A program made the translations under genes and the position numbers. The notes beneath the pieces are model-generated. The model was not told the DNA's origin. It made no database searches and saw only the letters and a list, made by a program, of their open reading frames with translations. A stretch of 64,000 bases of DNA from Tubulanus polymorphus. Its lineage: Eukaryota > Animalia > Nemertea. This document shows, piece by piece, positions 14,283 through 62,449 of the stretch (the stretch's first letter is position 1; the number at the start of each line of letters is the position of its first letter). The DNA is taken from assembly GCF_964204645.1 (NCBI RefSeq), contig NC_134035.1, positions 930,001 through 994,000 on the forward strand, read 5' to 3'.

Positions 14283-15599
14283 GAGCCCAAGTGGTTTTAA
14301 AAGTTAGACTGGTTTAGTTGTTGATAAAAGCCAATAAGAGAGGCATGGAACAAGTGGAATGAAACCACGGTATTGATATTTAATTTCCTGAAATGTGGAC
14401 TAATGCAGCGAAATACGAATGACAAGACTTGGCTTCGAAAATCGGACACACCCCTAAAATCCTACCACGTTATCATTGCCAGTAATTGAAAACGGTATTG
14501 ATAAATACTTTATCGGTATTGTTGTTTTAGCTAAAATCAAAACTCAATTAAACCACCTCCCTTTTTAGAATTCTAGTACGATGAATGGATAGCTTTGTAT
14601 CGATTATACATAACAATTATAAATAGCCTTAGAATATTTGGATGATCGAGTTTATAGCTTTGGGAATGTATTCTCGAATGTAAATTTTGATATTTTATTT
14701 GCGCCGCTGGCTGCTTACTATCCTGTGTATCTTCCAGCGCGATATTTGATGTGTCGAAAAGTCTTCTAACTTTCCTTTGTTCCCTGTAGAAAAAAGTATT
14801 CGTGTCTTTTGGCGACTTGTCGCGTTCGGCTTTCCGCGCGAAATCGTTCTTTCGAAACTTTCCTCGAAGGTCTATTTCCGATAACGAAATATCTGTGTCT
14901 TCGAGCGAGTTTCGTATGATATTCGAAACGTTGTTCCTGAACTTGGCGCTGATGAAAGGTCCTCTTCCCACTTGAAATTATTTTTGTCTAAGTCAGTCGA
15001 TGAAAATGAATATAAATCGATTGTTTCATCTGTTGATGTACAACGCTGTATTATTCTAGCTGGAGCGATTTTTTTTTTAATGGATTATTTTTGATGACGC
15101 GCCAAAAATCAGATTCGGCAAATTATCATCAAGTCTCGGTTGACGTTCATTAATTAACGCGTCGTCGTCAAAGCGTTGTTCGTCATTCGTTGTTTTACGT
15201 AGTTGGGAAAAAACGCCGGTGAATACGATTGAAACGGGCGAATGATGTTTAGCTCGGTGGGAGGAGGAGTTTAATACTCGGTGTAACTATACTGCGTTAG
15301 AGAGAAGAGTCTCTCATTCATGCGTTGCAGTAAAGTAATAGTAGTAGTAGTAATTTTTGCTGCCTCGTGTCGTTTGGACTGTTCAGAAAAAAAAAAACGT
15401 TAAGTTGACCGTAATATTATGATAGTGGACTATATAGTGTAAGCCTTAGCAGACGGGAGGAAGCTTCGAGGGATCTACCTGGATTGAATACTGCCTTTTG
15501 CGCGTAAAGGGATGTTGTCGTCTCAATTCATACGTAATCCTGAGTAAGTAAAAATAAACATCTACTGTTTGTATTACCGGTGACAAAGTCATGAGTAAA

Positions 15600-15799
15600 T
15601 AAATGAAGAAATCCCACACTTCGAATTTAAAATTATATGATCAAATTTATTCAAATTCCACCTGATGATGGCTGTTAGTCAACAGCCGAAACGTTGTGGT
15701 TTCGTAATAATAAATTTGATCGTATAATTTTAAATTCGAAGTGTGGGATTTCTTCATTTATCTACAGTATACACGGATTATAGTGTTTATTCGACAACT
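15600..15799 (+). mobile_element. Fold-back non-autonomous Penelope-like element with hammerhead ribozyme
   Basis: Inverted arms 15600-15651 and 15709-15760 (51/52 complementary), hammerhead in the loop, 39-nt 3' tail, flanked by the direct repeat GTCATGAGTAAA (15588-15599, 15800-15811). Confidence 0.8.
15658..15699 (+). ncRNA. Minimal type I hammerhead ribozyme motif
   Basis: CCAC-CTGATGA-T-GGCTGTT-agtc-AACAGCC-GAAA-CG-TT-GTGG: intact core, 7-bp stem II, 4-bp stem I, palindromic AACGTT in place of stem III. Confidence 0.8.
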
Positions 15800-17201
15800 G
15801 TCATGAGTAAACTTTGATTTCACTGGTGGATTGGGTAACCCGGGATGTTTGTCGGGGTCTGGACACCACCCCCCCCCCTTAAGATTTTGAGGTCCTTAAG
15901 AATTCCATCCTCATATATTCGGCAATGAATATTATTTTCGGAAGAAATGTCAAGTTTGACCTTGAAAAACTGAAAAAGTATCAACATTGTGTAATTGTGG
16001 CGACTACCCGTTAAAAAGGTTCTGAAAAAAATCCCAGTGTATTTGAGCAACGAAGTCGCTGCGGAGTTTGGGGTAAGACCCTATAATTTCTTACCTGTTT
16101 ATGTTTAACTCTTGATCCGCTCCTGGAGTTGGAAGTCAGATTTTAACTTTGAACTGGATCGTCATGTTTTGTTGTTTGAAATTAGATACATGTAATTACT
16201 CTTCGACATATTCAACGACCGAAATTTGAATATCGATGCACTTTATGAAGCCCCCACGCGCCCAGATATCCTATAACCTATGCGCTTTATTGTTTCATAG
16301 ATACATTTATACTGCGTTCTTATTAGATTTATAGCTGTTCGGCGCTGGCGGGCAAATCAAAAATTGTATGACAATTTCAATCGCTCTTAACACGTTTTAG
16401 AAATCTCTGCGAAACATTGTTTACGAGAACAAAGACGAGATAATCATTTATGGAAACGTCTCGAACGCACGAGCAATCGTTCATTCGTTTGTTTTCGTCG
16501 TTTGTTTCTATATATTCGTATTTTTGACAATTCGCGAAATCAAGGGGAAATAATCACTTGAAATGTGAGCGTAAATAGACGCGGCGGCGCGGATGATTGC
16601 GTTAGAAAACGATGAAAGGGTTCGGGGTTTGGCGATGACACACGAGATGAAAGGTACCCGTCACGTACCCGTATTGACCACGCCGATTGATAATAACAAC
16701 AATGGCGTTGTTCGCGTGTTGCTGAAACGGTGTTTATTGAGTTTCTCTATTACGAATTTTAGATATATTTCGATCTGTAAATACCAAACAACGAGTTGTT
16801 ATTCTTCGGAGATAAATCGACTTACCGATTATAGATTAACAATGGGGGTTTGTTTATCGGGCGAGCTGCTGCTGTTGTTGTAGGCTTCGTTGGGGTTTCG
16901 ATATTTTTAAGAATTGATCAATGTCGTTCGTACCCGGTGCATTCGAGTCCATCGATGTAAATCTTCAGATACGTTTGTTATGATTCAGCGATGTTTCCAG
17001 TCTAACTTATGATGTTTGTATGTTGTAACTTGGTCACAGTTTGTTGATGGTGTAACTTGTTCTGTTATCAGAGCCGTATGAATTCATCAAACTATTCAAG
17101 AGTGTTAGGAAAGTCATGAATTGGTCACAGTTTACGTCATAGTTAACTAGCGCGCAGTCCATAGCTTGAGGGGGTAGAAATTTTGGAAATATTATTGTTC
17201 T

Positions 17202-17255
17202 GATTCAACATTAAATTTCTATTGGATATATCCAATAGAAATTTAATGTTGAATC
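17202..17255. repeat. Perfect 54-bp palindrome
   Basis: GATTCAACATTAAATTTCTATTGGATA followed directly by its reverse complement. Confidence 0.95.
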
Positions 17256-19504
17256 CTTCACTTGTGACTTGACAAGCATTTTGTTATAGGCCAAACAAAA
17301 GGTCGGATTGTTACACAATCTCATCGGTTAGTTGTCTTCTAAATAACATCGTGGAAGCATAATTTTATTCTCATGCTTGTATGAAGAGCTTAGCTCTAAG
17401 AGAATCCAAATCAAGCCATGAAGATTTTCAAATCCTTGATTGACCTTTTTCATTACATCTTACGATGAAAACCAACTTCAATATTCGAATTCTCCCGAAC
17501 GAAACAATGGCTGGCTGAAATCGGCGACACGCCCTTCCGAGTTTCCCTCGGTTCAAAATCGAAAACTTATATAATTCTTCTGTTCTGTATATACATATAT
17601 ATATATATATCTATCTAATATCTATAATAACTTCAATCAGTTTATACCATGCTGGTAAGCGTGCGAGCGGCATAGAAAGTTCATCTGTTCATTCCGATAT
17701 CGATCGCGGTCGATGGAGAAATTTGAAAATAACCTAATGATATTAAAGCCTGATTGATGTCTATCGTTGTCATCTGCTGGAAGTTTCTTGTTTCAGAAAG
17801 TTTTTAGAAGTTCATTGTTTCGAATCATTAACGTACGCGAATGAAATCGATGGCTTTATTAAGCCCGACGGTGATCGTATTTCTTCTACAATGTACAACA
17901 GTACGAATTGTCGTTCTGGAATAAAAACTGAACAATCAATGAAATTTATGTCTCTCGTTTTAAATATTACGCAAACTGCGGCAGTAACAGGTCGAGAGAC
18001 TGTTTATATAAGTTTCCGGCGAAACTAAAAGCCCCGATTGAAAGTCAGTTATTGTTATAGATTTTAGAACGTGTAAGTTTATTGCATTAGACGTTATAGT
18101 AGTTTCAGTGAACGCCTTCCAATTTCCAATTGAAGAATCAATGAAATGGAGAATTCTAGTACGTTCATTTTTCCGGCCTCTCCCCGTTCGTCGAACTAGG
18201 AAAAAGTAACGTCTAACCTGCTGATAATGAAGTGGGGTGAGGGCATTTTCGAAATGCTTCTTTGAACTAAAGCAGCCATTTTTGCCGATAGGATATAGGG
18301 GTTGAAGACTGTCATCACATATCAGGTGCAGATCCAAGGGGACTTATGAGACTTGTACAAGTCCATCAAATCATTTTGATTGCCATTTTTCAAGATAATT
18401 GGTGCATTTCAATGACCTAAAATTCCTTCATGGACATCAGGTTCCTCAAAATTATCCCCTCAGTGCGGTAGTGCCCCTAATATTGCCTCTTTGCACGTCA
18501 AAGTGCCCTTTTGGGACTGGACAAGTTCTTCAAAATTGGCCCCAGGACTTGCAATTGCATATATGATCTCATTTCCGGATTTATGAAGTAAGAAATAGGA
18601 AAATCGAGAAAAAGAAATGTTTCTCGTTGATATTCACTGCTTCTTGTAACAGAAGTTTATTGTCTACCGTTTAATGGTATAAATGATCGCCTTTGTTTTT
18701 GATCTCGATGCGTTTGATATCAGAACGATTCAAAGACCTCGAAGAGAATAGTTTTATCTATGATCTGTTTGTATTTGTGTGTATGTTGTAATAGCCCAAC
18801 ACGTATCACATATGGTAAACTCAGGGTTGAAACTCCTGACGTCGGTATCCCTCCCGTCTTGTAAGACGGAACTTCTAATGAACAAATTCTTTGGATGAAG
18901 TTGTTGATGTTTGCATCGTCTTGTATTTAGTCTTTGAATCGATGTATATATATATCTGATTTATGGGACAATGTTTGATTAAGTACTTGTAGCAGAAAGA
19001 TTGAGACCGAAGCGTTGGATTGTACCTTAACATTGCTTTTGCTGCGGACTCATTTTCTGAGAAATCATGGTTCATATGGGTTATTTAGGGTGTCCTGTGG
19101 ACAAATGGTAATTCGGGTTTTGTGCTTATTTGGGAAATATATAACAGTTACTTATAGTGGTTCCTTTAACTTGAACAATGATTTCAGGTAAATTTATTTT
19201 CACTTCTCTGATTTAGTTTCAGAGATGTCTTGACAAAAATGCTGTGAAGCCTTTTGTTCCACAGTTTACATTGAACAATGTATTGAACTTAATTGATTCA
19301 CTGTTACATCAATCTACATGTATCTATCTACTAGATTCTGTATTTCATTTGGCTTCTCGTCGTATTTTTTATCTTAGTTTGTAGAAAAAAAATGTTGATA
19401 TTGATCCTGTTATCGATGTTGATTGTTTGATGTGCACAGCAGTAGCATTAACGACGATATCAAAGTCTACTCTAGCTTCTAAACTTAAAAACAAAATGCA
19501 TTCA

Positions 19505-19870
19505 TAGCAGTTGAAATCCTATTGCACACTAGTGACACCTAGTGGATCCTTACCTGCCTCAAGTGGAATCCTCTATTGCCACAGTAGTTGATGTCCTACT
19601 ATACACTAGTGACACCTGGTGGATCCTCACATACCACCGTAGTTGATGTCCCACCGCACACTAGCGACATCTAGTGGATCCTCACTTGCCACAAGTGCAA
19701 TCCTCTATTGCCACAGTAGTAGTTAAGATGAGATAAACGTTTATTCGCCTGACCAGAATAAGTATAAGGTGATCAAATACCTACTACACACTAGTGACAC
19801 CTGGTGGATCCTTGTTGCTGCCCTACTGCACATCAGTGCATGTGGTTGGTCCTCACTTGCAACAGTAGCA
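19505..19870. repeat. Irregular minisatellite with a CTCF-like core
   Basis: Four copies of ACACTAG(T/C)GACA(C/T)CT(A/G)GTGGATCCT with CCACAGTAG-type linkers. Confidence 0.85.
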
Positions 19871-20623
19871 TTGCTGGCTCCTGATATTGATATTGATATC
19901 AATGAAGCTTAGAATAAACTGTTCACTGCATGTGTTACTCTTCCAGTCAGTTGACTTCGACTCTTGTGACAAGCGGTTATTTTTCCGTCGTATAATTACC
20001 AGTTCAAATGGGGGTAGTTCGAAAATTTTGCCCTTTTGTCACGAGGATGCCTCGCGGTGTCGCCGTGTAACGCGCGCCAAACGACGATCGTAATGACTAA
20101 ACAAAGGAGAGCCTGAAATTACAGGGAACGTGACGACTCCGGAGTCAGACTCCCTGTCGATGATGATGATGATGCTGATGACAGGGGCTACAATCCAGGT
20201 GACTCTTATGACACGTAAATTACGGGCGTACATGAAACGATGCTTCCGCGTAAAAGCGTCGCCAAAAAAACAGTTCTTTTTCGGATTACAACCTTAAATA
20301 CATTATTGTTGTATTATTAGTTCAGGGAGTGAAAAAACTTGCTTGTTTTTCACAGAAAGTTTTCACTTATTGATAGCTGTTTTTGTCCCCCTTTAATTCT
20401 AAATCGGTCTCTCTGTTGTGCAGGATATAGGCTGAACCTGTGGATGGAATCTTTTGAAATTTGATGAAATACTGTCGGATCATGTATATGGGAGGAACCC
20501 GTCGTTGATTTTTGAGGTGACACCTTTCAACGTGCTTGACTCGTCTGAAAATAAACCTCCGTTTTGGATTGAAAGTAAGAATTAGTTCATCTTTTATGTC
20601 TTAACGCAACAGTCTAACCTCAG

Positions 20624-20731
20624 GGTCCAGTTCCACAGTTCCGAGTTAAGATTTAACTCTGGGTGAAATCACTGAAAATGAACTAACTTTAACTCAGAGT
20701 TAACTCTAACTCACAACTGTGGAACTGGGTC
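20624..20731. mobile_element. Hairpin MITE family C variant
   Basis: CCAGTTCCACAGTT...AACTGTGGAACTGG inverted ends; central TGAAAATGAACTAA; related copies at ~34000-34095 and ~40660-40765. Confidence 0.75.
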
Positions 20732-21332
20732 TAGAGGTCCACAGGGACCTAAACTCCTACTCTGTAACTGGTTTTGTCAGGGAAAGGCTTCGTGAAAATT
20801 GAAAGAAAATGAATGATATCGTCTCGGCATTCTTGAATTCAAATTTCTCATTTTTTATCTTCAAGAAAGTCTCGCCGCCTAATTGCAGCAATCTTTGACG
20901 ACGATGACAACCTGTCAAAACTAAGAGCAGGTCGCAAGTAAGTCGCCGTCGACGTCGAAGAATAACGAGATCTATTCTCGTTGTAAGACCTCTTTGTGTC
21001 AATAATTAAACCGACGCTAGACAAGGGTTTCGTTTTAACGTCTAAAAATCAAGACAAACAAGTTGTCAGGAGAGACGGGCGGCACTCGATCCGAGCCTCG
21101 CGTCATTAATGATAATCCGATGAATGGAGGATTATGAATATAAATAAATCGTGAATATTTCAGGCGATTTCGTCGACCGAAGAGCTCTTGAATATTAAAC
21201 ATCTATTATTCATTATCGGACAATACGAAATGATTTGTCGAGTTTCTGCCGAGTTTCTTGAGAGGCAGACGACAAGAGACATTGACACTATCGCTAAGAG
21301 AGTTGTGAGTTTTGAAGTGAGAAGCAGGGAGG

Positions 21333-21379
<47 letters not shown>
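21333..21379. repeat. (CAG)n microsatellite, ~15 units
   Basis: Direct reading. Confidence 0.95.
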
Positions 21380-21381
<2 letters not shown>

Positions 21382-21599
21382 GAGAGAGAATTTGACATTG
21401 AAAGTCCTATAAAGTATTGGCATTTAGTTTTCAACTTGTGAGTTATCCATTAATCACATACTCTAAATATTGTCGCATTTTGCAGCCCATCTCTGAGGCC
21501 CTGAAACAATCCTCAAATCTCAAGTCTCTTGGACCCCTTTTATCTAGGATGGCTATGTGCTAAATCCCCTTTGATTTCATCATATTGCCTGCGTTCTGT

Positions 21600-21690
21600 A
21601 GCCGCGTTTTGGCCACACGGGTGCCAAATGGGCCCCGTGCCTGTTTGGACGCCAGACCAGGCCTGAGCCAAATTTTAGCACGGGACAAAT
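21600..21690 (-). mobile_element. MITE family B fragment
   Basis: GACCAGGCCTGAGCCAAATTTTAGCACG is the reverse complement of the family core. Confidence 0.55.
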
Positions 21691-23123
21691 TATTAAATTT
21701 CTAACTTCGCTTTGTTTGTGGGCGTTGTTTTTAGTAAGGAGTGGGAGTCAATTTGATGACGTCATCGGTCGATTTCAGAGGAAACCATCGTAACGCAATC
21801 TCAATTGTGGACGCGAAATGTGTCCCATCGTGAATCTCGCTAAAATAAACGACTTGCGAAATTTCCATCCGATTTGGTGAGTGTATAACTGAAGTTCGTT
21901 ATGGCAACGCATTCTGTTATCAAAAATCCAATTTGTTTGCGTTATTGTGCGTTTCGAATAGTATTTCGAGGCCGTCTTTACAAATGAAATGGCATTTAAT
22001 GACAAATGAAATTTGTGTTCTGTTCATCAATTCTTGGCTGTTATACAGAATGGTAGCTCGTCTCCGGCGCCGGTGATCAGTTGTTACTGGCTGTTGATAT
22101 TGATGTAATAATATCTATTGTACGAAGGAAGGGTTCATCAGTCATCGCAGCTCAAACCGGGTCTACGTCGGAAAACTGACTATACACTCTTCACCATCGA
22201 AGATACCCGCTTAGTTAAAGTCCCCTATGACACCATACAATCACGCAGGCCATATTTCAGTGGCTTCAAAAGTAACACTTGGTTTCACTTACTTTCAAAC
22301 TTATGTTATTCGAGGCCAAATTGCTGAAAAATGAAGCAAAATGTTTTCTATTTTCACCGCAATATGCCAGAAGTTGTGAAATGGCTCGTATTCAAAATTT
22401 TCCACAGGAGTACTCCGACTTAAACCTTTGGCATGTACCCTTTAGAAAAGTCTACTTTTGTGAGAATCAACCCCTCACCCAGGACCTTGTTAATTTTGAG
22501 ATGATGTATACAAAACTACACTTAAAGATCGCATCCATTCTTAGGTTTACAATACCTGAATATGACTACTGTCGGATTACTCTAATGTTTTGTGAAAACT
22601 GCTACAATTAGAGATATCAGGTAGTCTGGTATGGTCTGGTCTGCGCTGGTCTGGTCTGCGCTGGTCTAGTCTAGTCTGTACCCTTCTACGGAAACCACAG
22701 CTTCAGCCTCGGTCTCAACCATTACTTTCCACCGTGTATTGTTCTAAGGATTGGTTTCTTACTCATTTCACGAGAGAGAGAACACTCAGCAATAAAACTC
22801 AGATAATCAGAGCCGCAGTTGATACCGACAGATTCGACCCCCTGCTTATTGGTAACTTACATAAACATGGCCGCAGCTGATTGCTGATTATCTTGTTCGG
22901 GAACAATGTTCAGGTGTAACTGCTTGAAGCTATGAAAGCCGGGCGAAGATAAACATCTCCATTCCCCGCAATAACACAAAGAACGCAATAGAATAGAATG
23001 GACAGTTTAGAAGGAATAGTTACAAGATTTATGGTAAAAGTGCACCAGGATTTCTGGAAATGTACATCGCAGCAATATGAATTTAGGGTCATAGGAGTTC
23101 TTGATATCTGAAAAATAATAGTA

Positions 23124-23329
23124 AGGCCATAAAAAAGAATGAAAGCTTTTTTCTTATTATCAGCCGGGGTCACTTTTGTAAACTGCAATAAAATTTGCGA
23201 TCAGTTCATTGCTATAGCTGCCGGGCCTCTTATTGTTAGCTCGATCATAATGGTGTAATGTACAGGGTAGATTGGCAGCCGACTGGGTCAACTTGGTAAT
23301 GAGAAAAAAGGTATCAACTTTTGGGCCCA
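23124..23329. mobile_element. TIR MITE family E, degenerate
   Basis: ACTGCAATAAAATTTGCGATCAGTTCATTGCTATAGCT matches the 11221-11259 region. Confidence 0.65.
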
Positions 23330-23331
23330 GT

Positions 23332-23346
23332 GCGCCACCTAGTGGC
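23332..23346 (-). promoter_or_regulatory. CTCF consensus motif
   Basis: Minus strand GCCACTAGGTGGCGC is a full match to CCASYAGRKGGCRS. Binding is untested. Confidence 0.45.
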
Positions 23347-24228
23347 AGAACTAGAGAGAAAAAAACTTTTTCTTGAATTGAAGATGACCTCACAACTAGA
23401 TATGACATATCCAAAATGTAATGGGAATTTCGGAGTTCGCCTTGTTGAGCCTGAGCCTGAGAACCGTTGTCGCCTATGGCTTGTTTTGGCGCCAGCATCA
23501 TTCATTGCATCTTTGATTCCCGGTTAATAGGTCTGAAAACTTTGACTGAGTGCTGAATCCCAGACAATATTTTTATGAGGTTTTCATCGTGTGGTGAATC
23601 ATAGAGGAATCGAGCGATTTTTGTCATCATCATCATCTTCATCATCGGCGGTCGTTATCTTACATAATTAACACGTTGTGCGTCGGTCGTTGCGTTATAG
23701 ATCATGACATCAACGAACAACGAGAGCTCGGGTGAAATTTCCGCTCGCTGACAACGGCGGCCATATTTCTCGTCGTCGGGTTCCGTCGCCGAACAATAGC
23801 GTAACGCGTCGGGCGCGCGTTATCGCCCGCGGGCGCCGGTGATGTATCGACGAAGTTGCCGACTTTTGACCCGCGCGTCGTAAACCGACTCCGACGCGGG
23901 ACGACCCGCGAGTCGTCGTCGACGCGGAACCGTTACCGATGTAACGAGCCGATACGATTCACGCGCACGGTTGCCTGACGTTCGACGTCGTTTCCGTGGG
24001 TTTCGACAACGGCTTTAAACAATAGTAGACGGAGAGATCGGGCTTCGAACGTCTTCGCGGGGTTATCAGGCGAGCGGCGATGAATTCATCGACACAAACG
24101 CGTCGGACAAAGTTTGAATAATTCAATAATGCGTAAACATGTCGCCGTATGACAGGACGTACAACAACCGCTCGCTCGATATGATGCAAATGATGATCAC
24201 TTTTCGTCGGCAGACGTCAGATTGTCAC

Positions 24229-24330
24229 CGTGGCCACTTACCTGGAAATCAGGGAAAAGTTAGCGAATTTTCTTTTATTTTAAAATATTAGAAACTAAAA
24301 AAATCAGAGAACTATTGGGGAAATTTGTTG
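24229..24330 (+). mobile_element. MITE family A fragment
   Basis: GTGGCCACTTACCTGGAAATCAGGGAAAAG...GGGGAAATTTGTTGA. Confidence 0.65.
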
Positions 24331-24647
24331 ATTACCAAATGAGTCGATGGATGCTTGACTAGGACCAAATTAGGCCTGATCAACAATTGTCTGATAAAGG
24401 CCGTGTACTCGCTGTATGAATACTAACAGTTCTTCCTCATTGTTTTGATGGCATTTTAGTAATGAGAGTGATTTTTACGCGCTATCTTATTAAGCCTGGG
24501 CCAAATATGACTGGTTCAGTCCGGGCCAGTTTGGCCCGGGTCGAATTGTCCCGTGTAGACACTTAATAAAAAAGACTGTGGAACTGGTGTTACACATATA
24601 GGACAAGCTGTATAACCACTGGACAAGTGGTCTACTGGTTAACAGAT

Positions 24648-26137: not shown

Positions 26138-26206
26138 GTAGGATCCATTTTTTCAAAGTCCAAATGCTTTTTTAATCACTTTTCTGATTTGCTAATCATA
26201 GCTTAT

Positions 26207-36745: not shown

Positions 36746-36790
36746 TGCTCATAACACACATGACTGGTAGACTGATATTAGGCTTAAAGA

Positions 36791-37025
36791 GTTAACAAAT
36801 AAAAACCCACAGCAGATATTGAAAAGTTAGTTAATTATCTGACTAACAGATTCGGGGTTACTTCTAAACCCTTTCATCAGAGAGACCATACAGATTTTAT
36901 GGTTTCACTGATGATCGGGTTTAGAAATAACCCTGAAACTGTTATTCAGATGATAAACTAACTTTTCAATATCTACTGTGGGTTTTTTACTTGTTAACCG
37001 CGTCATCATTTTGAAACATGACACT
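36791..37025 (+). mobile_element. Older fold-back element with two degenerate hammerhead motifs
   Basis: Imperfect palindrome 36791-36998. Plus strand: CTGATGA (36908)-GGGTT...AACCC-t-GAAACTGTTATTC. Minus strand: CTGATGA (36880-36874)-aa-GGGTT...AACCC-c-GAATCTGTTAGTC. Tail hairpin GTCAT...ATGAC. No clear TSD. Confidence 0.7.
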
Positions 37026-37952: not shown

Positions 37953-37994
37953 TTTCAACGTTTTGACTAAATTTTTACTAGTCATCTTCAGGAG
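37953..37994 (-). ncRNA. Degenerate minimal hammerhead motif (Penelope-like terminal repeat remnant)
   Basis: Minus strand CTC-CTGAAGA-T-GACTA-gtaaaaatt-TAGTC-AAAACGTT-GAA; core GAAA is changed to AAAA. Confidence 0.5.
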
Positions 37995-39541
37995 CATTTC
38001 CCTTAGTAATCTAATAGTCATATTCAGGAATAATGAGTTACATCACAGTTATAGGTAATTATATAATACGATAGTGAATATAGATATAGATTTAAATCAA
38101 TAGATATTGAAGACATGAACTAGCAGGTACTTAAATCAAAACAATAGTCAGATATTAGAGACAAACTAGGGGGTACTCATTCATTCATTCATTCATATTT
38201 TATTGCTCAAAAAAAATAATTTGCATAGAGCATCGTTTTTAGCAAGATAGCAAATGTAACAATAGTTCAAAAGTATTTCAAGCCTTTTCTAATATAAAGA
38301 ACTAAGTTGAGACGAGTTCTTCCTACTTAGATCAAAACAATATTAGAGACAAAGTAGGGAGTACTTAAATAAAAACAATAGTCATTCAAACTTAGGTATT
38401 CACTATTGTTTTGACCTGTTTTGGAACTTTATATCGATTTTTTCGTTGTTTTTGTATGATTCTCTAGATGTTTCTTTGGATATGTGTTATTCGCGTTATC
38501 TGGGATCTAGTTCTTACCCTTGAACACACTCTACTACCATCATCATCTATCGGCGAAGAAATGCTAATTAACAAGATGTAATTTTTATCGTCCTCCCGAC
38601 AAATTGACCGAATTCTTCGTTAACTATTATTCTAACACCGATTTTAGGTGCGCCTGATTCTGCGCGGCTCGGTTTAGAAATAAAAAAAACTTGAACTCCT
38701 GCGTCGGAATATCTTATCATATGATAAGACTGCGATTGTTTAGCCGGAGAGAGGGTATTTGTTTCAGTTCGATGGTTGTAAACAGACAATTTATGGACTC
38801 TAAAAACGTAGAAATGGCCCTTAAGATTTAATAAATAATGGCATCGGTTCATCGTAACAACCTGAAAGAGAGGTATTGTGTATCGTGGCAACTTTTGTCT
38901 AGTGTTTACGCGTATATATATACACTTTGTCAATTTCTCCTCTCCCTCCAGTGAGAGAGTGGGTTTTACCTACGTTCTGGAAATTTATGGGTTCGGAAAT
39001 ATTTGCAGCAGCAATGCCGGAGCGCAAATGAATATTTCAGCGAAATAAAAAAAAAGAGAGAACATCGGGGCATTGTTCGCCTCTGTGTGAGATTTACGAT
39101 TGCCCCGTTTGCGTAAGAAAGACAGTAACATAAGTTGTGAAGAAGAGTTACTGTTCTCGTTATAGATTACTAGCGTTTGTAGACAAAGAGAGAATCAAAT
39201 GGGTTCTACTACTCGAACTTATCAGTCGTATCGAGAGAACAGATCGACCATTTTCCGATGATCTGCGATATCATTTTAGAGGTATTTGTTAGATTTCGGC
39301 CGTGAGTTTGAAACTCGTTCCTCGGTAACAGTTTGAAAATCGATGTGAATATTCTTCGGACAGAGTTCTTTGCCACACTAGACTGAGTGCGCAGGTTTCG
39401 CCGCAAGAAAATTTGTGGCTATAAACAGATTGCCCGTTGTATAATCGCTGAGGCAATTTCATGTTTAAATGAAAATGGAAAAACCCTGACTAAAATGAAA
39501 CTGGATTTCTGATTTGCTAATCATGATATCATCTAAGCTGC

Positions 39542-47643: not shown

Positions 47644-47928
47644 CCCTTTCAATGCTGACTTATTAATACCTGAAAATGCTGGTTATGATTTGAAATTTCA
47701 AAAGATTCCAACTCTGTGTGTTGAAATAACAGACCATATCTGTATGGTTCACCGCGGTGCGGTGTATCGTTAATTACTAATATTCCACTGTTTGACAGGT
47801 GCTGCCATCTTTCAATTGAGATAAAAACCAATTACTAATTACATCGACAATACACCATGATGCGGTGTACTAGCAAAGTCTGTCACCGGTTTTATACACC
47901 GCACTGCAGTGTAGATGCACTGAAAGGG
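47644..47928. mobile_element. piggyBac-like MITE
   Basis: ttat-CCCTTTCAATGC ... GCACTGAAAGGG-ttaa; CCC/GGG termini with a TTAA-type flank. Confidence 0.65.
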
Positions 47929-49179
47929 TTAAATTGTTAGATTATTGGCCATTCAAGTTGTTTTGTTGTTTAAAACATAGTTTTCAGTTTTAATCTCAGT
48001 CTATTGCGTAACTGGTCCTTCGGTTTTTATCTCCATCTTTCCACAGAAGACACAGCTATCGCGTAATGATGATAATATACTCGTCCGACGCGTCGGTATC
48101 TAAACGGTTAAAACAGTTCCCTACACTCCGTCCGTTATCCTATCGCTTTTACTACAAAGTAGTTTGTAAGTACGGAAAGAATGGATCGCGCATTTTGCAG
48201 TAAACAAGAGCGAAAGCGATCTGATAGACAGCAACAAGGTACGATAGATAACGGAACACCTACGGTTTACAACTGATTCATTCATTGCCGGCGCTATTGT
48301 AAAATTGGCCGATGAGCGAGGAAGAGAGAGAGAGAGAAAGTAAGATGATTCTACATTCCTAGTCGGTGTATTAAATCACCTCACAGTCAGATAGCTGAGT
48401 GAGAGGAAAAAAACAATGCTGTTTTTCAGTCGATTCAAAACACTCCTGCTGAAGATTCAGTCGAAAGTGCGTCTAAGTCAGCGTTGTTTTGCTATAAACA
48501 GTTGGGGGTTTTAGTTTAACTACTATTTAAAAGATGGCATGACAATCTCATGCGTTTTTTTTTCTATGGTTATGGAAAATCAGAAAATGATCTCGTAATA
48601 GAATTTTCTCTATTTTGACAAACTTTTTGAAAATACTTTGTCAATGGTATTTATTTACATTGAACAGGCCTTCATTGCTTATTCTACTTTGGTGATGTGC
48701 CGAACTTAGGGATATGGAAAATGAAATCGGTAAACTTCCTAAAAAACGCTGTTATCATTATCTATGACACAGTGTGCCCCTTATTGGTCCAAAGATCTCT
48801 TGTTTAGAAAATGCTGCTTCAACTTGTTGGTTTTTTGCGAAGCTTTGTGATCAAAATGAGCTATAACCGAAAACATTCCTCGTAAACACGACTTTCGTGC
48901 GTCAAGTTTTCAGATCTTGCGTTTGTTTTTGTGATGCTTAGAATTCTGTTCGCTTTGATGTTTTTTTTTTCTCTCTTTTTCCCGGATGAAAAGAAAATCA
49001 TTTTTCGAGCAACGATTAGTCACTGTTCTTTATTACCGTGATACTTCTGTTGCGTCAGTTCTATTTGCCGAGGAGGTCGTCGCGCGAGTAAGCGTGAGTG
49101 AGCGAGCGAGGAGCACAGTCACATCCACCTGCTGAATCATGGCTACAATAAGAAATGAGATGAGGAAAAATACGTTTCC

Positions 49180-49560
49180 AGTGGTCTTAGAGTTGTTAGA
49201 TAGGCAATAGAACGTTAAATTTGAATGTTAAATTTGCTATAGAATCAAAATGATCTTAGACTGGGTCTGAAGTTGTTAGATTGGTTATAGAATCAAAATG
49301 AGCTTAGGCTGGGTCTGAAGTTGTTAGATTGATTATAGAACCAAAATGAGCTTAGGCTGGTCTTGTTGTTATATTGGTTATAGAAATAAAATGAGCTTAG
49401 ACTGGTCTTAAGTTGTTATATTGGTTATAGAACTAAAATGAGCTTAGGCTGGGTCTTAAGTTGTTAGATCGGTTATAGAACCAAAATGAGCTTAGACTGG
49501 TGCGAACTTGTTAGAACCTAAATGAGCCTGGTCTTCAAATTATAAGACTTGCTATAGAAC
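49180..49560. repeat. ~47-bp minisatellite, ~7 units
   Basis: TATAGAA(T/C)CAAAATGAGCTTAG(A/G)CTGG(G)TCT(T/G)AAGTTGTTAGATTGGT. Confidence 0.9.
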
Positions 49561-51189
49561 CAGGAACAGCTTATACCGGGGTCCTATATGATGGTGACTT
49601 GTGACACTATGATGTAATGTGGATAAACCCCTCACAGTTACAGCGATCAACACTACAAGTTTCTACCCGAGCGTACAGTACATACAGTATCTTAACCAAG
49701 AAATCGGCAAGAAAAAAACAATGATTTTTTCCGTAATGATTTCCTCTGCCATTGTCGCTATGAGTCGAGATGATGTCTCATAGTGCATCCGCAGGGTTAA
49801 CATGTTGCGATTTCCCTCGGTTTCCCCGTCGTCGATGTTGTCTGCAGCAAGCAATCGTCGGGGTCCATCGTCATCGTGTGTTGTTTATTCGAAAGGGATT
49901 ACTCATCGTTGTCAATACACATTGTTGCTGAGTCAGACCCTCGTCGTCGTTGCCGATGACGAAGGAAGGACAGACAATTCTCTCTCTCGGTATCTTCTGC
50001 TTTTTCTAATCCGTCTGCTGTAAAAGAGCGCCGATTGTTAATTGTCTTGCGAGGCGAGAGGCGTACGTCGTCGTCGTTGATGCGCGTTTTGTTTGTTGAA
50101 TACGCGCATCAAGGTGAATATACATTCGTCATGCATCATCGCGACATTCGTTTGTCTTTGATGACAATTAATGGCGTTGGATTAAAAAATCAGGAGATTC
50201 TCGTGCGCGTCGTCGTCATCGTGATTTTTGATCGCTCAAAACGCCTGAATAGCTGATCGGAATACGTCTGTGGTGTTAATTGCGTAAATGAAAAATACAT
50301 TACTAGTGTCTTCTTTTTCTTTTTGAATTCAATCGTGAACTGTTAACTCATTATTTTTACCAACCCTCCCACCACTGAGGTTACTCCCGATACTGTGGTT
50401 ACTGCGCCTTTCCTGGTTTTGAATTAGTTGAAGTTTCTTTATCTCAATCCTATCGGTATAGAAACAGTATGCCGTGACAATTTTGGAGAAACAGTTTTCC
50501 ATTACAATTTTTGGTTCTCAATGAAGCTTACCCAAGCCCAGTTAACCAGTAGAGACTGGTCTTAGTTGTTGAATAAGCTGTAAAACCAATATTGGCTTCA
50601 AAGTGGTCTTAATCTAAATCTTGATTACATCTAACCGAAGGGTTTAGTAGCATCCCGAGGGAGGTGTGGACCAATAGGACTTGTTCATCTGCGCTCTCTT
50701 GCGATGAGAGGCTTCGCTATCATTGTCATCTTCACCCGTACCGATTGCGTGTCTCCAAACATTGTCCGTCGTATTACAGCGAATTTTATTCCATAGCCGC
50801 GCGGAATTTGCTGTTTAAATTAGCCAATTCGATGTCTGTATCGTCCCCACAGACGCTGCTAGTAATCTATCGATCTATGACGAACATAGACAACGGCTAT
50901 TGTTCGAACTGGCGTGCTTAAATACTTTTGTCATTTCGGACGAGTTTCCCCGAGGGTATCGACGAGCTCTGAATCACGCTAGTCGCTTGAACACACGACC
51001 GGCTGGCCATCGGGAGTCACCGATTGTTGTGTCTCGTGCAGATACGAATTCCGATACATGGTGTCAGCTGTGGTCAGTGCGGCCTGTTATAATAATGATA
51101 ATTTTACTTCATCATCGATGAAAAGGAAAATACATGGAATGTACAGAGATAGTAGATAAATGATAGAATTAAGGGTTGAAGATTTGATT

Positions 51190-51459
51190 TGATTAATTTG
51201 AAGAGAAATATGAAAGTTGTTACCGAGGGTCTTACTGTTGACTACTGATTAATTAGAACAGAAATATTAAAGGTGTTACTGAGGGTCTTACTGTTGATTA
51301 CTGATTAATTTGAAGAGAAATATGAAAGATGTTACTGAGGGTCTTACTGTTGATTACTGATGAATTTAAACAGAAATATGAAAGATGTTACTGAGGGTCT
51401 TACTGTTGATTACCGATTAATTTGAAGAGAAATATGAAAGATGTTACTGAAGGTCTTAC
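51190..51459. repeat. ~56-bp minisatellite, ~4.5 units
   Basis: GAAATATGAAAGATGTTACTGAGGGTCTTACTGTTGATTACTGATTAATTTGAAGA; degenerate relative at ~43665-43765. Confidence 0.9.
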
Positions 51460-52275
51460 AGCAGTCCTGTGCTGCTGATGATGATGATAATGATGATAAT
51501 AATGTTTATGATTAATATGCGAGTTGGTTTATGATATGCAACGTGGAGTATACGACGCATGAAGGATTTCTACCATCATTCGTCCTATTCTTACCGGATT
51601 ACCATAAGTTTACGAACCGCGGCTATTAGTTTTACATGAATGCAGCGTTGATGATCGCGCTGAATAGCGTCATCGTTCGACCGTTTGACAGGCCGGGGTA
51701 CATCTCGTCGCCGCTGACGGCATTCTCGGCGTTCCGAATCGGCTATTGTTGCGTCGTCGTATTGTATTGTTCGTCGATAGATCAATGTCGAGAGTATCGT
51801 CGTCACGATGCATGACGGAACGAATGCTACTGTTGTCAGTGTGTGTGTGTGCGTGTAGAGCTATTCGCTTAATTTGTAAATTCTAATTGAGAAGTTGAGT
51901 GTAGCGGTCGCGCGACGCGTATGTCTCATGCTTGTTGTATTACAGACGCAGTCGTTATTACTGATATCATAAATTCTACTGCCATTCATGACATCATTGA
52001 GTTACGTATTTATACGCGCCGCTGTTGAAAGTTAAATTTGACTCTTGTCGTCGTCAAACCGGCGCCAGTTCAGGTTTGACTGTAGATTTTGAAGCTAATC
52101 CATCATTGTTGAACAGTGACACAATTAGCCTCACACTAACTGTGGAACTATGGGTCCTGAGTTGAGCTTTCACTTGAATCAAATTGAGCCCAACTTCCTT
52201 AATCGGGTTCAATTCACAGCTGTAGTGCCGGTTGCTAATCTTTGAGAGCCGTTAGTAGACTGGATCCTGTCATAA

Positions 52276-52504
52276 GCCGCGATCACACAGACAAATTGTC
52301 CCAGATCAGGCCCAAGTTGAATTTGGCCCGTGCCTAATTAGTGAGTGCGTTCACACATAAACCGCTAACTCGATACAATGCTTTAACAAGTGGGTCACTT
52401 CCGGTACCAGTTGCAATTCACATGGACCTGTGCTGAAATTTGGCTCCGGTCGGACGTTTTTGGTCGCGCCTAGTTTGACTTGGGCCAAAAATGCTAGTGT
52501 GGCT
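52276..52504 (+). mobile_element. MITE family B copy
   Basis: taa-GCCGCGATCACAC start; GTCACTTCCGGTACCAGTTGCAATT core. Confidence 0.75.
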
Positions 52505-54293
52505 GAAGTTATAGTTTAGAATTTAATTTTCTCAATGGAAAGAAAACATTATTGACAATTAAATATCAAAAGATACTATATTTTCAGGGGGAGGGGGTGC
52601 TGAAGGTGACCATTAATAGTACGGAGTGTTATTACTGGGTATAGAATAGTGTAAATGTTGGGAGGATTTAAACTGCGATGTCTGTGTTTAATTACGTTGA
52701 GCTCGTGTAAATTTACGCGCCCCATTATCAATGATTTATCGCGAATTGTGAGACGCAGGAATTGACAGAAATTCTAAATATGGAAAAATTCATGCGATGA
52801 ATCGATACGCGTTCAGTGTAGTAACGATGCAGTGAGGGATGGTATTGGCACATTGACTCTTTCATGGACCTGTTTTAATAGAACAAACTCTTCATTTTCT
52901 TCAGTCTGGATTTTTCATTCTCGTCGATATTTTCTGCATCGTGTATCGCTAACTGTAGAATCGTTATTCTGTCTTACGAATTTTAGTTGCTCATTGACTG
53001 AACCGAAAGTTTTTCAATCCTAGAATATCCTGATTCTTTTCAGATGCGGATTTAGGGGTTGGTCTCGGTGATCTGGACTTATGCTTTCCCACTTAGTTTG
53101 CTCTTTTCATCAAGACACACTTAGTTAAAACCTAGTTGAAACCTGCAGATTTGACACTCATCTTTCGGAACTGCATCTTTTCGGACCCCGCTAGTGGCTT
53201 CTGACATGGCTGCTACATCTGAGAAATGCCTAGTATTTTCTTCAAGACCCTGTTCTTCCAATTTTCCTCTACTTCTGCTATTACTCAGCCCCCACTTCTA
53301 AAATGAAACTCAATATTTTGATTAGTTCATCAAACTTTGTTTATATTATGGATACTTTATAGAATTGGAGCAATGCACGAGTTCATCACCACAGAAGACA
53401 TCGGATACTGATTGTACTTAAATTATGAAAGCGTGTCATTATCAGCCGCGGCGGCGTCTCGGGTCACAATGAGTTGCACTTGTATGACGCATACAATATT
53501 CTACAGATGTCATTATCGTCCGTTATCTTGTAAAGGCACGCTCTGATGCCGGCGATGACTAAAAAACCGGCAGCAGCAAAACCTGTAGTCGAAACCAACA
53601 ACTAAGAAGACGTTCATCGGCTTTGTCATCTCTCTCTCCGTCTCTGTGAGGGTATTGTATTGTGTATGTGCGTGAGATCGGCGCGACGACGATGGCGGAG
53701 TATGAATCATCGTTACTGATTATCCTCTGAGATGCTGTATGGCTGCTCAGGCGACAAACGGCTGCGCGCACGACTGATTAGGCATTGTAGGGCCACTCTG
53801 AGTTGTTCGCGCAGGTCAGACAGGATTTTCCAGTACGGCTGAAATTGCGTTCAGTTTGATCCGATCCTTAATGAGGAATCGGGAGCTATTATTATTTTCA
53901 TCGTCAGCTGTGTCCCCGCGTGTTGTTCGAGGTCGTTCCTAAGACCTCAACTCGGATGAAGAACTGCTGCCTTTTTCGTAGTTCTACGTGGTTTTAGATT
54001 AAGTCAGTATCCTTGTACCTACAAATATATCTAAAAATGGTCTTATTCCACAAAGTAGTCTTTGACATTCGGGATCCAGTTACATAGCTAGCGGTTGACA
54101 TTCGAATTTAAAGGTTGAAAATATTTGAAATGAACCACGTTGAAACTGGGGGAACATGGTTTGTTGGTGGAGAGATTTTATCTGTCGGCAAAATGGAAAA
54201 CTTCAGACGCTAATAGTACCATGAGGTGACGAGAGAAATCCCACAATAAATTCAGCCAAAACGAGAAACTTAGATATATATATATATATATTT

Positions 54294-54331
54294 GCGCAAA
54301 GTTTCGGCTAAATACTATTAGCCATCATCAG
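54294..54331 (-). ncRNA. Inverted hammerhead copy lacking its own 5' stem I strand
   Basis: Minus strand reads CTGATGA-T-GGCTAA-tagtat-TTAGCC-GAAACTTTGCGC with a perfect stem II. Confidence 0.6.
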
Positions 54332-54375
54332 TACGCCTGATGATGGCTAATAGTATTTAACCGAAACTTTGCGTA
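54332..54375 (+). ncRNA. Minimal type I hammerhead ribozyme motif
   Basis: TACGC-CTGATGA-T-GGCTAA-tagtat-TTAACC-GAAA-CT-TT-GCGTA; 5-bp stem I, one mismatch in stem II. Confidence 0.7.
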
Positions 54376-56647
54376 AACATATTTACTCATCTATTCAAGT
54401 TTCTCGTTTTGACTGAATCAATGTGGGATTTCTCTCGTTATCATCTTACACGGATATTGTGTATCTTCTCGTCTCACCATGAGGTGGTGTCAGGCAGGAT
54501 GAGGTTTGAAGTCATTGTTGAATGCATCCCGAGCTTTACGGCTTCAAAAACGAGTAAACAGTAGTAGAAATTTTTAAAAAACGACATTTAGACAAAGCTC
54601 TTCGCGTCGATACCAGATGCTTCGCGTACGCGCGCCGCGTACATCTTTCCTCTCTTTCGTTGCCTCTTCATCATCATCATCATCATCATCATCTATCTAT
54701 CTAACTATATACCGTATCGTGCTCTTCGCCGGGAGATGTTCTTTACAGCATCGTAAATTCCTGTTAAATCGTAGAATTTCACCCGATAACGCCATAAGCC
54801 GATGATGTATGCGAAGAGAAGTTCACATTGTGTTTCTTCGCGCTGTTGTTGTGTTTCGTGTTCACAGTGATGAAGATCGCGGGGTTTTTTTACTGCTCGA
54901 ATGCAGTAGATTCAGCACGGGCAGATCTGTGAAAATGGGAAGGCCGGGTCCAGAAGAAATGAAAAGGCATTTCTCAGATAGAGCAGCCACTAGCGAGGCC
55001 CCACTCTGGGTGACAATAGTATGAAGGAATACATCCTTATAGGTTTAACTCTGTCTAAACAAATATGGCAACTTAAGTGGTAAGCCCTGAGACCACCCAT
55101 TAAATCCACCCCTGATCAGCGGCGTTACGCCATGAATATTTCATTTTAAGTTATTTGCCAGTCGCGTATCGGGAACATAAAAAGTCTTTCTTTTCTTAGT
55201 TCAGTTTGGCAAATTTTATCTCACAATTGGTGACAGGGTCCAAGTTTTTTGCCTGTACCTCGTTGAGAATTGGGTAAATAGAAAGTTAAAATGTGGTGAC
55301 TCTTGTCTGAAATATAAACGCGATTCTGGAACTTTGTGAAGAAATTGATTTTCTTTTCATAATGGGAAACTTGCTTTATCTAAAAGCCGAAGATCGATTG
55401 ATAGTTATAACGTTGATTCGGGTGTGTTCTCCGTAAACGAGAAGAAAACTTGCTGAATCGCAAAGTTTTATCGGTTTAGCTGCCGGGTAAAGAAACAAAA
55501 ACTTTAAGTGTCCTTTTATTGGACGGTTACATTAACCGGGGTTGAGTAAATCCTTTAAAACCGGAGTCGACAGTGTGAAGACACTTTCCTTATGATGAAA
55601 CGCAAATAATAAAGCTCTGTAAATACAATATCAACGCGCGAGACTATTTCATTATCTCAGAAAGTTCTCGCTACGCGCGCGGCGCGCTCGCAAATGAAAT
55701 ATATATATATGAAAAATCGATTTCGAGAAAGGATAGTCAACAGAAAGGGTTATTTTCATCAAATCGACGTTTACATAACAGCCACTTGACTAACCTTTTG
55801 TAGAGCGCAGGGTAGCGCGATATACCAGTTGTAATCGGCTTTTGTTTTTATTTTCCGCCGCTGATATCTATTACTACTCCGGTTGGAAGTTTTTTCCGCT
55901 GTCAGTTTTATCGGAATATAATTGGTCTGTTCTTTTTCAAGGTTGGCTCAGCCGCCGAGCGATGCCGAACCCGCGGAGCTGTATGATAATAGCGCATCTG
56001 TATTAAAGAGTTGCACCTGAGTTTATTTATAAATATTTACGCGGGGCGGTTCGTTAGAATAGCGAGTTGAGAATACCGACATGACTTGAGTCATCTATAT
56101 ATCTATGCAGTGTCCTTTCTTTTTCACTACCCAGGCATCCCGCAGTTGTGAAGAGGGCTTTGTTTTCCCGAGCTGCGAAAGACCACCCACTGAATGTTGT
56201 ACTATGTACCTGGGTGTTGCCTGCGGCCGGCGGCGCGGCCAGTGAAAATGATAATAACTGCTTATCAACAAAATGTCTACAGCTTTCTTATAATAGTTTA
56301 GTGAAGTTGAACAGCGCTGTTAAAACGTAATTTACAGAAATTCCCTCATCGTCTCTACCCCTCGTACAAAGAGTTTAGGTGTTTTCGCATTCATATCAAG
56401 AGATTTATATAAACAATAATACTTTAAAGGTGTAAAAACCAAATAATAAATAAAGAAATGGTGATCGACTTTTTCTCAACGTAAATCTTGTAATTGGTAG
56501 CACTTAGTCACGAATCCGGGCTTCCACAGGTATTTCTGTGTTATAGGTGATGAGAGTTTTTGCGGGAGAGATATCTATGTTTTATGAAAAAAAGAACATT
56601 ATTGCCCGCATTGAATACATGATATGGTAGAATCCTCCTTACTCCGT

Positions 56648-62321: not shown

Positions 62322-62449
<128 letters not shown>

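Follow-up and report, generated by a model that had tools for sequence, protein, structure and literature searches.

Hammerhead-bearing fold-back insertions in Tubulanus polymorphus as very probable head-to-head by-products of Penelope-like elements

Three fold-back insertions of 200-250 bp lie at about 15600, 36791 and 54229 (elements 1, 2 and 3) in the window analysed here, a 64,000-nt stretch of Tubulanus polymorphus NC_134035.1 whose positions serve as coordinates. All three are present where an earlier note on this DNA had placed them. They are very probably dead-end products of canonical Penelope-like elements (PLEs), which encode a reverse transcriptase (RT) with a C-terminal GIY-YIG domain, and consist of two head-to-head copies of the pseudo-LTR (pLTR) of such an element, a unit of ~110 nt that contains a hammerhead motif. 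One of the two copies bears an extra tail of 30-40 nt. The parent PLEs are active in this genome, and the fold-backs are a known by-product of insertion and not a new class of element. The link to Penelope and the existence of several families, both proposed in the earlier note, are upheld: three families are seen, one per window insertion, and the arms of families 1 and 3 match the ends of autonomous elements at 97-100% identity.

Element 1 is composed of the following features.

15588..15599, unstranded: left target-site duplication GTCATGAGTAAA, an exact 12-nt direct repeat (spacing 212)
15600..15651, minus strand: inverted, tail-less arm, a copy of the family-1 reference end (about 1555-1611)
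15652..15654, unstranded: junction filler CAA, 3 nt, between the arms, from the alignment of fold-back copies
15655..15761, plus strand: direct arm, a complete family-1 pLTR beginning ATTCCAC
15655..15699, plus strand: minimal type I hammerhead, by descriptor match, pair counts and published features (PMC4209133)
15762..15799, plus strand: tail of 38 nt with a small hairpin ACAC/GTGT, on the direct arm only
15800..15811, unstranded: right target-site duplication GTCATGAGTAAA, an exact 12-bp direct repeat

The inverted arm stops short of the hammerhead, and the inverted arms are 96% complementary over 57 nt. The right arm is 97-99% identical to the terminal 145 bp of an element that encodes RT and GIY-YIG upstream; the direct arm itself is 97.9% identical to the end of one such RT/GIY-YIG element (L014) and at most 99% identical to other copies. 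In family-1 copies that extend upstream past the 145-bp unit, the sequence continues into an ORF with an RVT_1 and a GIY-YIG domain, and matches to both domains were found upstream of the unit in loci L014, L010, L026 and L016. Arm lengths of the head-to-head structures in this family range from 0.1 to 1.4 kb. In family 1 the 5' ATTCCAC is predicted to pair with the GTGGGAT box; this pairing was considered as a general feature and rejected, as it is not kept in family 3.

The hammerhead of element 1 has a helix I of CCAC/GTGG, the core CTGATGA at 15662-15668 followed by an unpaired T, a helix II of GGCTGTT/AACAGCC, and GAAA at 15688-15691 followed by a palindromic ACGT, an arrangement that is predicted to cut after T15695. 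The unpaired base after A9, the G10.1-C11.1 pair, the palindromic helix III, the long helix II and the short helix I are all features of the published PLE minimal hammerhead. A descriptor of the minimal hammerhead gave three matches in the window, the expectation from shuffles being 0.02; these are element 1, the inverted arm of element 3, and a site at 14949 that looks like a chance match. A hammerhead core had been read in all three insertions, and that of element 1 stands, whereas the window copies of elements 2 and 3 are mutated in the core or stems. The proposal that stem II sequences differ while pairing is kept agrees with two-sided changes across the families: helix II is 85% paired, with six of its seven pairs changing on both sides (in 4-5 independent lineages, so that the statistics are modest), and its covariation score of 0.49 compares with 0.20 for shuffles and with a maximum of 0.26 on sliding. 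The Rfam hammerhead models (Hammerhead_1, Hammerhead_3, HH9, HH10, Hammerhead_II) gave no match in the window at the gathering score, and none in five loci even at E<=10, which is expected because the motif lacks a closed helix III. The sole matches in the Rfam scans were chance ones, of long hairpins to miRNA models. Translation from the AUG within CUGAUGA, where the ORF of the anole element starts, was also rejected, since this frame is just 21 codons long for family 1 and 6 codons long for family 3. The putative ribozyme is a passenger within the pLTR.

Element 3 has a similar organisation.

54218..54228, unstranded: left target-site duplication ACCATGAGGTG, an exact 11-bp direct repeat
54229..54331, minus strand: inverted tail-less arm, a near-complete pLTR, with hammerhead core at 54331-54325 and an (AT)n expansion
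54332..54438, plus strand: direct arm, the family-3 pLTR, with hammerhead core at 54337-54343
54439..54475, plus strand: tail of 37 nt with hairpin TACAC/GTGTA, on the direct arm
54476..54486, unstranded: right target-site duplication ACCATGAGGTG, an exact 11-bp direct repeat

Over arms of about 100 nt the complementarity is 87%, and the direct arm of the window copy has a mismatch in helix II and a changed 16.2 base. No PLE ORF was found by tblastn in the window or in the family-2 and family-3 loci. The arm and tail of a young family-3 fold-back are 100% identical over 150 nt to the repeats at C1:15223349 and C1:15226206, which by their coordinates are direct, on the same strand and 2857 bp apart, and between which lies an unbroken frame of 817 aa that matches GIY-YIG at C1:15223974. 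This 2857-bp spacing is found again on C2, C3, C4 and C5, and GIY-YIG matches occur in 817-aa frames 476 bp upstream of 100%-identical repeats. From these coordinates we infer an autonomous family-3 element with direct pseudo-LTRs around its ORF, the domain match being to GIY-YIG. Full-length family-3 elements also occur head to head, again by coordinates. An RT/GIY-YIG partner with the same 3' end, as sought by the earlier note, is present for family 1 and, with RT presumed, for family 3; for the old family 2 none was found.

Element 2 is an old, decayed copy of the third family (family 2).

36763..36790, minus strand: tail, decayed and one-sided, left of the palindrome, common to relatives L063-L080
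36791..36893, minus strand: tail-bearing direct arm with a hammerhead remnant (core 36880-36874, GAAT for GAAA)
36894..36998, plus strand: tail-less arm with a hammerhead-like remnant (core 36908-36914)

The arms are 88% complementary, the nearest relative of the tail is the L066 variant, and homology to the relatives ends at 36998, with nothing shared rightwards. The three insertions had been taken to share one orientation, which holds for elements 1 and 3; element 2 lies on the opposite strand, because its conserved one-sided tail is at the left, on the minus strand. Its flanks hold no convincing target-site duplication. A candidate, (A)ACATGAC (about 36755-36763 and 37015-37023), matches at 8 of 9 positions and would leave 16-18 nt of unexplained filler, and was not accepted because the estimated probability of such a match by chance is about 0.06. 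Element 2 is also the insertion that most resembles a miniature inverted-repeat or foldback DNA transposon (MITE), being a near-perfect palindrome of 208 bp whose arms end in TTAAC, with TTAA-like ends alongside. However, each of its relatives bears a conserved tail, about 32 nt long, on a single side, a minimal hammerhead complete with helix I and helix II persists in both arms of the relatives, and the target duplication of relative L073 is about 11 bp and not TTAA. With elements 1 and 3 identical to retroelement ends, we rejected a DNA-transposon origin, which is exceedingly improbable for any of the insertions, on the grounds of the asymmetric tail, the duplications of 10 to 15 bp and the retroelement-end arms.

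The tails are 38, 37 and about 28-32 nt long in elements 1, 3 and 2, respectively, and in every case occur on one arm only; the inverted arm is always without a tail, as the earlier note had described and as would be predicted from the two known start sites of PLE reverse transcription. Elements 1 and 3 have in common the GTGGGATTTCT box and the tail motif TACACGGAT...GTGT and, as also described, are the two insertions with direct repeats of 11-12 bp. These target duplications measure 12 and 11 bp in the window, and 10-15 bp in eight other independent copies. In family 1 the outer ends fall at reference position about 1606-1612 or at 1645, and the tail-bearing arm can be either the short or the long one. 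The outer ends thus lie at two fixed sites about 38 nt apart, matching the two reverse-transcription start sites, and the cleavage and extension of both strands, reported for an anole PLE (PMC11167929). It is reasonable to suppose that the conserved GTGGG(A/T)TTT box, which adjoins the inner start site, may act as a recognition signal.

The fold-back is formed afresh at each insertion. Junctions vary among independently flanked copies, and among the family-3 copies sampled the arms are 100% identical in 10 of 21, while the copies differ from one another by 5.7% on average; any one arm asymmetry is common to at most three of them. These samples consist of the best-scored 30-40 of about 760-1170 candidates, picked with fold-back queries, and their proportions are not genome-wide estimates. 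The earlier note had proposed instead a distinct, compact, ORF-less family, in which hairpin and tail propagate as a non-autonomous unit mobilised in trans by a PLE protein. There are indeed many copies of like architecture with independent target duplications, a pLTR-only template without a protein makes some action in trans plausible, and retrozymes have been proposed as non-autonomous derivatives of pLTRs (preprint 10.64898/2026.07.22.740005). Nevertheless, we consider a distinct family improbable, since the arms are the pLTRs of autonomous elements, at the high identity given above, junctions vary among otherwise near-identical copies, the arms of young copies are identical with no asymmetry inherited, and the same architecture is seen at all arm lengths, up to full-length elements. 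Certain junction types do recur, although they are few overall; CATCA|TCAG, for example, is found in about seven family-3 copies. This could reflect some inheritance, but is accounted for just as well by microhomology within the palindromic core. Alternatively, single 5'-truncated copies might have been made palindromic later, by errors of replication or repair, and the centres are in fact unstable, with deletions at the junction and expansions of (CAT)n or (AT)n. Such a secondary origin is very unlikely, however, as the target duplications enclose the whole fold-back rather than a single arm, the inverted arm stops at a fixed tail-less site in every copy, and the youngest copies already have identical arms.

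Given formation at each insertion, one may outline a mechanism in which the PLE protein would nick both DNA strands, and each nick would serve as primer for reverse transcription from one of two internal start sites, which lie around the tail hairpin immediately 3' of the GTGGG(A/T)TTT box. The two cDNAs would then be extended as far as the 5' terminus of a short template and join there, with a few nucleotides lost or added. That template would be the full-length RNA's leader or else a transcript beginning in a pLTR. In family 1 the direct arm begins at reference 1499-1502 in 18 of the 30 loci of the best-scored sample; five of these 18 are a single insertion inside another repeat, leaving 14 independent events, and in the remaining 12 loci the start lies anywhere from 1 to 1514. 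The 5' ends of the arms cluster at TCA|TTCC in family 1, TCA|GTAC in family 3 and, about 10 nt before the core, TTA|GTTT in family 2. Each of these sites agrees fully or almost fully with the YYANWYY initiator pattern, a match that is loose and was spotted after the fact. That the arms end at one base by the hammerhead, on an initiator-like motif, suggests that the template may end there at an RNA 5' end.

The same products might also arise if the template were a separate short RNA, started at the initiator-like first base of any 3' or solo pLTR and copied in trans to give a monomeric retrozyme- or SINE-like lineage; as template, this RNA would take the place of the full-length RNA leader. We regard this as possible, though doubtful. 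It would accord with the clustering of arm ends in all three families, and internal initiation makes the read-through 3' end of such an RNA irrelevant (PMC11167929). Against it stand the looseness and post hoc nature of the initiator match, and the fact that initiation at the tail of the upstream pLTR in a full-length RNA predicts identical products. The fuller form of this speculation, in which the pile-up of arm ends marks the true start of PLE RNA and pLTR-only RNAs from any pLTR form a trans-mobilised SINE-like or monomeric-retrozyme lineage, seems to us rather unlikely. If true, the head-to-head products would record, in vivo, reverse transcription that had been primed on both strands, and the hairpin loci could also supply small RNAs that silence the parent elements.

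Public reads holding the locus came from four small contig-type runs of one study, none of them RNA. The insertion is present in the best run, because flanking contigs enter the element from both sides, and no empty allele was seen in the four runs. Summed contig depth over the hammerhead is about 3000 times the flanking depth; although no count, this figure roughly indicates a very high copy number.

Since such hairpins resemble MITEs or new ribozyme elements and would mislead repeat annotation, their assignment to PLEs is useful. The fold-backs are clean natural footprints of PLE insertion, recording two fixed start sites about 38 nt apart, copying from both strands and a template with a discrete 5' end. 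They agree with the in vitro work on one lizard element and extend it to an invertebrate; no new class of mobile element or ribozyme is involved.

The suggestion that this architecture may be undescribed does not hold, as it is already published (PMC8557442, PMC4209133, PMC11167929). With the PLEs of PMC8557442 (2021) the present elements share the RT and C-terminal GIY-YIG, the pLTRs with their hammerhead, copies often truncated at the 5' end, an inverted and 5'-truncated copy directly adjoining the 5' end, and a tail of 30-40 bp at one end only. They differ in that truncation here is extreme, leaving only the pLTR on either arm and a MITE-like product, and in the concentration of arm ends at the pLTR's first base. 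Cervera and de la Pena (2014, PMC4209133) described minimal hammerheads in metazoan PLEs with the same core CUGAUGA...GAAA, the unpaired base between 9 and 10.1, the G10.1-C11.1 pair, a helix II of 6-7 bp, a helix I of 3-5 bp, and the palindromic 15.2-16.2 that implies action as a dimer. That study reported paired motifs 100-700 bp apart on opposite strands, most motifs being single and 'probably related to truncated PLEs', but left the head-to-head pairs undissected, whereas here the boundaries, tails and target duplications of such pairs are mapped.

Metazoan non-LTR retrozymes (Cervera and de la Pena 2020, PMC7229834; Li, Clavereau and Pollet 2026 preprint) are likewise short and ORF-less with a type I hammerhead, are related to PLE pLTRs, and are thought to depend on PLE machinery. 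Retrozymes, however, form head-to-tail tandem arrays that yield circular RNAs; no tandem array, their hallmark, was found at the three window sites, where the copies are single head-to-head, inverted pairs flanked by a target duplication and bearing a tail, and the fold-backs show no sign of independent propagation. For the anole PLE PAc, two adjacent internal start sites in a stem-loop, with a spacing that sets the tail, and cleavage and extension of both DNA strands were demonstrated in vitro (Frangieh et al. 2024, PMC11167929). In contrast to PAc, the evidence here consists of genomic footprints alone and comes from an invertebrate, and whereas the start sites of PAc lie within the ORF, the pLTR and tail described here appear to precede it.

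The three short fold-back insertions that the earlier note had read from the bare sequence are real. Both site reading and the repeat finder recover them, each as two head-to-head arms, and the direct repeats of 11-12 bp proposed for two of them are exact. Their positions in the window are as follows.

Fold-back insertions and their flanks in the window
15588-15599 and 15800-15811: exact 12-bp direct repeat flanking element 1 (repeat finder)
15600-15799: element 1, a fold-back with arms of 57 nt, 96% complementary (site reading and repeat finder)
36763-36790, minus strand: tail of element 2, left of its palindrome, closest to the variant at locus L066
36791-36998: element 2, a near-palindrome of 208 bp whose arms are 88% complementary (site reading and repeat finder)
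54218-54228 and 54476-54486: exact 11-bp direct repeat flanking element 3 (repeat finder)
54229-54475: element 3, a fold-back with arms of ~100 nt, 87% complementary (site reading and repeat finder)

A direct repeat at element 2 was absent from the repeat-finder output. The box GTGGGATTTCT is common to elements 1 and 3, as is the tail motif TACACGGAT...GTGT that had been noticed. Perfect trinucleotide arrays also occur in the window, (CAG)15 at 21334-21379 and (TGC)42 at 62323-62449. Among sequencing reads, the element 1 locus occurs in only four small contig-type runs, all from one study and none of them RNA. In the best of these, over 15200-16200, flanking contigs enter the element from left and right and break within the repeat; the insertion is therefore present in that run, which may derive from the assembled individual itself. 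Summed contig depth over this interval is ~3000 times higher on the hammerhead than on the flanks, and neither an empty allele nor an RNA end could be seen in the four runs.

Searched with element 1, the 268-Mb genome from which the window comes gave ~760 first-look candidates, many of which match the right-hand 145 bp alone, at 97-99%. Upstream of this unit many family 1 copies have further sequence in common, whose translation is an ORF with RVT_1 and GIY-YIG domains, and the direct arm of element 1 is 97.9% identical to the final 145 nt of an autonomous Penelope-like element (PLE) at locus L014. For family 3 the search gave ~1100 candidates, and more than 25 sites match the arm and tail of one young fold-back, L032, at 100% identity over 150 nt. 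On contig C1 this end occurs as a pair of direct repeats with a coding frame between them.

Autonomous family 3 element on C1
C1:15223349-15223498 and C1:15226206-15226355: family 3 direct repeats 2857 bp apart, 100% identical to the L032 end
C1:15223974-15224150, same strand as the repeats and between them: GIY-YIG match inside an uninterrupted 817-aa frame (genome profile scan)

The distance of 476 bp from the GIY-YIG match to the downstream repeat is found again on C2 and C4, and further 817-aa frames adjoin identical repeats on C3 and C5. This element, known from its coordinates and the GIY-YIG profile match, looks intact. An RT/GIY-YIG ORF lies upstream of the family 1 end and an 817-aa GIY-YIG frame between family 3 repeats; for two of the three families there is therefore an autonomous partner that shares their end, the test set in the earlier note. 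The link to Penelope drawn there was right. Genome-wide, at least 150 GIY-YIG matches passed the Pfam cut-off; uninterrupted frames of 833 aa contain about a dozen of them, and frames of 817-820 aa contain several. These numbers suggest that ORFs are still intact in several PLE families of T. polymorphus.

One family 1 fold-back insertion recurs with identical flanks in at least five places (L018, L019, L021, L022 and L030, on C5, C5, C3, C3 and C6), and thus rides inside another multi-copy repeat. At its junction a CATCATC derived from the inverted hammerhead core has expanded to (CAT)n arrays of a handful to ~45 units. Beside the family 1 copy in L008 lie a LINE-type RT fragment with an FADD motif (62-821, minus strand) and a 373-aa ORF (1666-2787, minus strand) that looks like a seven-helix receptor.

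The fold-back itself is created at insertion and is not inherited. The arm-to-arm junction varies among family 1 copies that differ in flanks and target duplication, the inverted arm stopping at position 1496, 1500, 1509, 1516, 1549-1564 or, in L017, 1041 of the reference, and fillers of a few bases also occur. Family 3 has at least eight junction forms among 21 copies; the arms are 100% identical within 10 of these, against a mean difference of 5.7% between the direct arms of separate copies, and each arm-to-arm difference is common to at most three of the 21. Head-to-head arms occur at any length (57 nt against 1400 nt, or 575 nt against 716 nt, for example), and the tail sits on the long arm in some pairs and on the short arm in others. 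By GIY-YIG and pLTR (hammerhead-bearing terminal repeat) coordinates only, C5:7313720-7321041 shows the fold-back architecture at full-length scale: two family 3 elements in head-to-head order, both with an 817-aa frame and both with a truncated unit in front. Given the varying junctions, the identical young arms and the full range of arm lengths, the tiny elements of the window are the short extreme of ordinary PLE insertion structure; they lend no support to the new compact fold-back family that had been proposed.

Element 2 departs from its first description, in which it had a right-hand tail and the orientation of the other two. Its relatives have nothing in common to the right of 36998, so that tail is not part of the element; what family 2 relatives do share is ~32 nt on one side only. 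With this tail at the left, on the minus strand, element 2 is opposite in orientation to elements 1 and 3. A near-palindrome of this size could be taken for a MITE, a reading ruled out by the one-sided tail, by the good minimal hammerhead in both arms of its relatives and by a target duplication of ~11 bp in one of them, L073. The best relatives reach just 72-80% identity, and no autonomous partner came to light; family 2 is an old family.

The hammerhead proposed in the earlier note agrees point for point with the minimal type described for the pLTRs of metazoan PLEs (PMC4209133). The window's own elements 2 and 3 carry core or stem changes that disable it, and Rfam found no hammerhead at gathering scores in the whole window, nor at E<=10 in five loci. 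The motif has the core CUGAUGA, one unpaired base after A9, a G-C pair at the start of a long helix II and then GAAA; helix I is short, and in place of a closed helix III stands a palindromic ACGU, which would imply action as a dimer.

Hammerhead of element 1
Helix I: CCAC/GTGG
15662-15668: core
Helix II: GGCTGTT/AACAGCC
15688-15691: GAAA
After 15695: predicted cut

A descriptor written to fit this architecture, a check already suggested, gave three matches in the window against 0.02 in shuffles: one in element 1, one in element 3 (inverted arm) and one at 14949-14997 (plus strand). The last has a weak 4-bp helix II with wobble pairs, lies within a 132-aa minus-strand ORF (14573-14971) and is probably due to chance. 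Pairing in helix II is kept although its sequence differs, as had been observed: in 21 aligned segments drawn from the families it is 85% paired, with two-sided changes in six of the seven pairs. A covariation score of 0.49 compares with 0.20 in shuffles (0 of 500 reaching 0.49) and with at most 0.26 when the partner is slid; as just four or five independent lineages contribute, these statistics are supportive, not strong. Helix I of family 2 (AGAAA/TTTCT) is out of register in this count because of one extra base in its helix III. At 37956-37998 (minus strand) a decayed hammerhead-like stretch, with CTGAAGA, an unpaired T, the helix GACTA/TAGTC, AAAA instead of GAAA, and CGTT, may be what remains of an even older PLE end. 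In family 1, ATTCCAC (15655-15661) can pair either with the GTGGGAT box (15743-15749) or with the GTGG of helix I, alternatives that might form a switch from one fold to another; the pairing with GTGGGAT is not conserved in family 3.

The inner ends of the arms are clustered. When 30 family 1 loci were mapped onto a 1645-nt reference end taken from L014, the direct arm started at 1499-1502, just before ATTCCAC, in 18 (14 independent events, five loci being one insertion inside another repeat), and anywhere from 1 to 1514 in the remaining 12. In family 3 homology begins at one base, TCAGTAC, in more than 25 sites, and the arms of its fold-backs both end there or a few bases away. The start bases, TCATTCC, TCAGTAC and, in family 2, TTAGTTT, resemble a YYANWYY initiator, a loose match noticed after the fact. 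Such clustering suggests a template that stops at the 5' end of the RNA. The RNA copied into both arms could be the leader of a full-length RNA, with reverse transcription starting in the tail of the upstream repeat; equally, it could be a short transcript starting in any pLTR and copied in trans, and the two would yield the same products.

The outer ends are fixed at two points. Family 1 copies finish at reference ~1606-1612 or at 1645, and family 3 copies at query position 118-125 or 155. A small hairpin sits in every tail, be it the 38-nt tail of family 1, the tail of 37-38 nt of family 3 or that of ~32 nt of family 2. The loops are alike (GAUUA or GAUAU), on stems that differ by two-sided changes, ACAC/GUGU in families 1 and 3 against ACUGA/UCAGU in family 2; the hairpins are so short that their fold energies are not distinguishable from those of shuffles. 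Just inside the inner of these two ends, the GTGGG(A/T)TTT box may be part of the protein's recognition signal, as the earlier note proposed and as we infer solely from its conservation in three otherwise dissimilar families.

The two outer ends and the hairpin tail match, here from genomic copies alone, the start sites of an anole PLE, for which reverse transcription in vitro begins inside a stem-loop, at two neighbouring internal sites that bound the tail, and both DNA strands are cut and extended by the protein (PMC11167929). As footprints left by PLE insertion in nature, the fold-backs have a modest value. Their structure was known already: PLE insertions are frequently 5' truncated, a truncated copy in reverse orientation adjoins their 5' end, and one of their two ends bears a tail of 30-40 bp (PMC8557442), a structure that the window fold-backs share at its short extreme. 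Minimal hammerheads had also been noted in pairs on opposite strands, at distances of 100-700 bp (PMC4209133).
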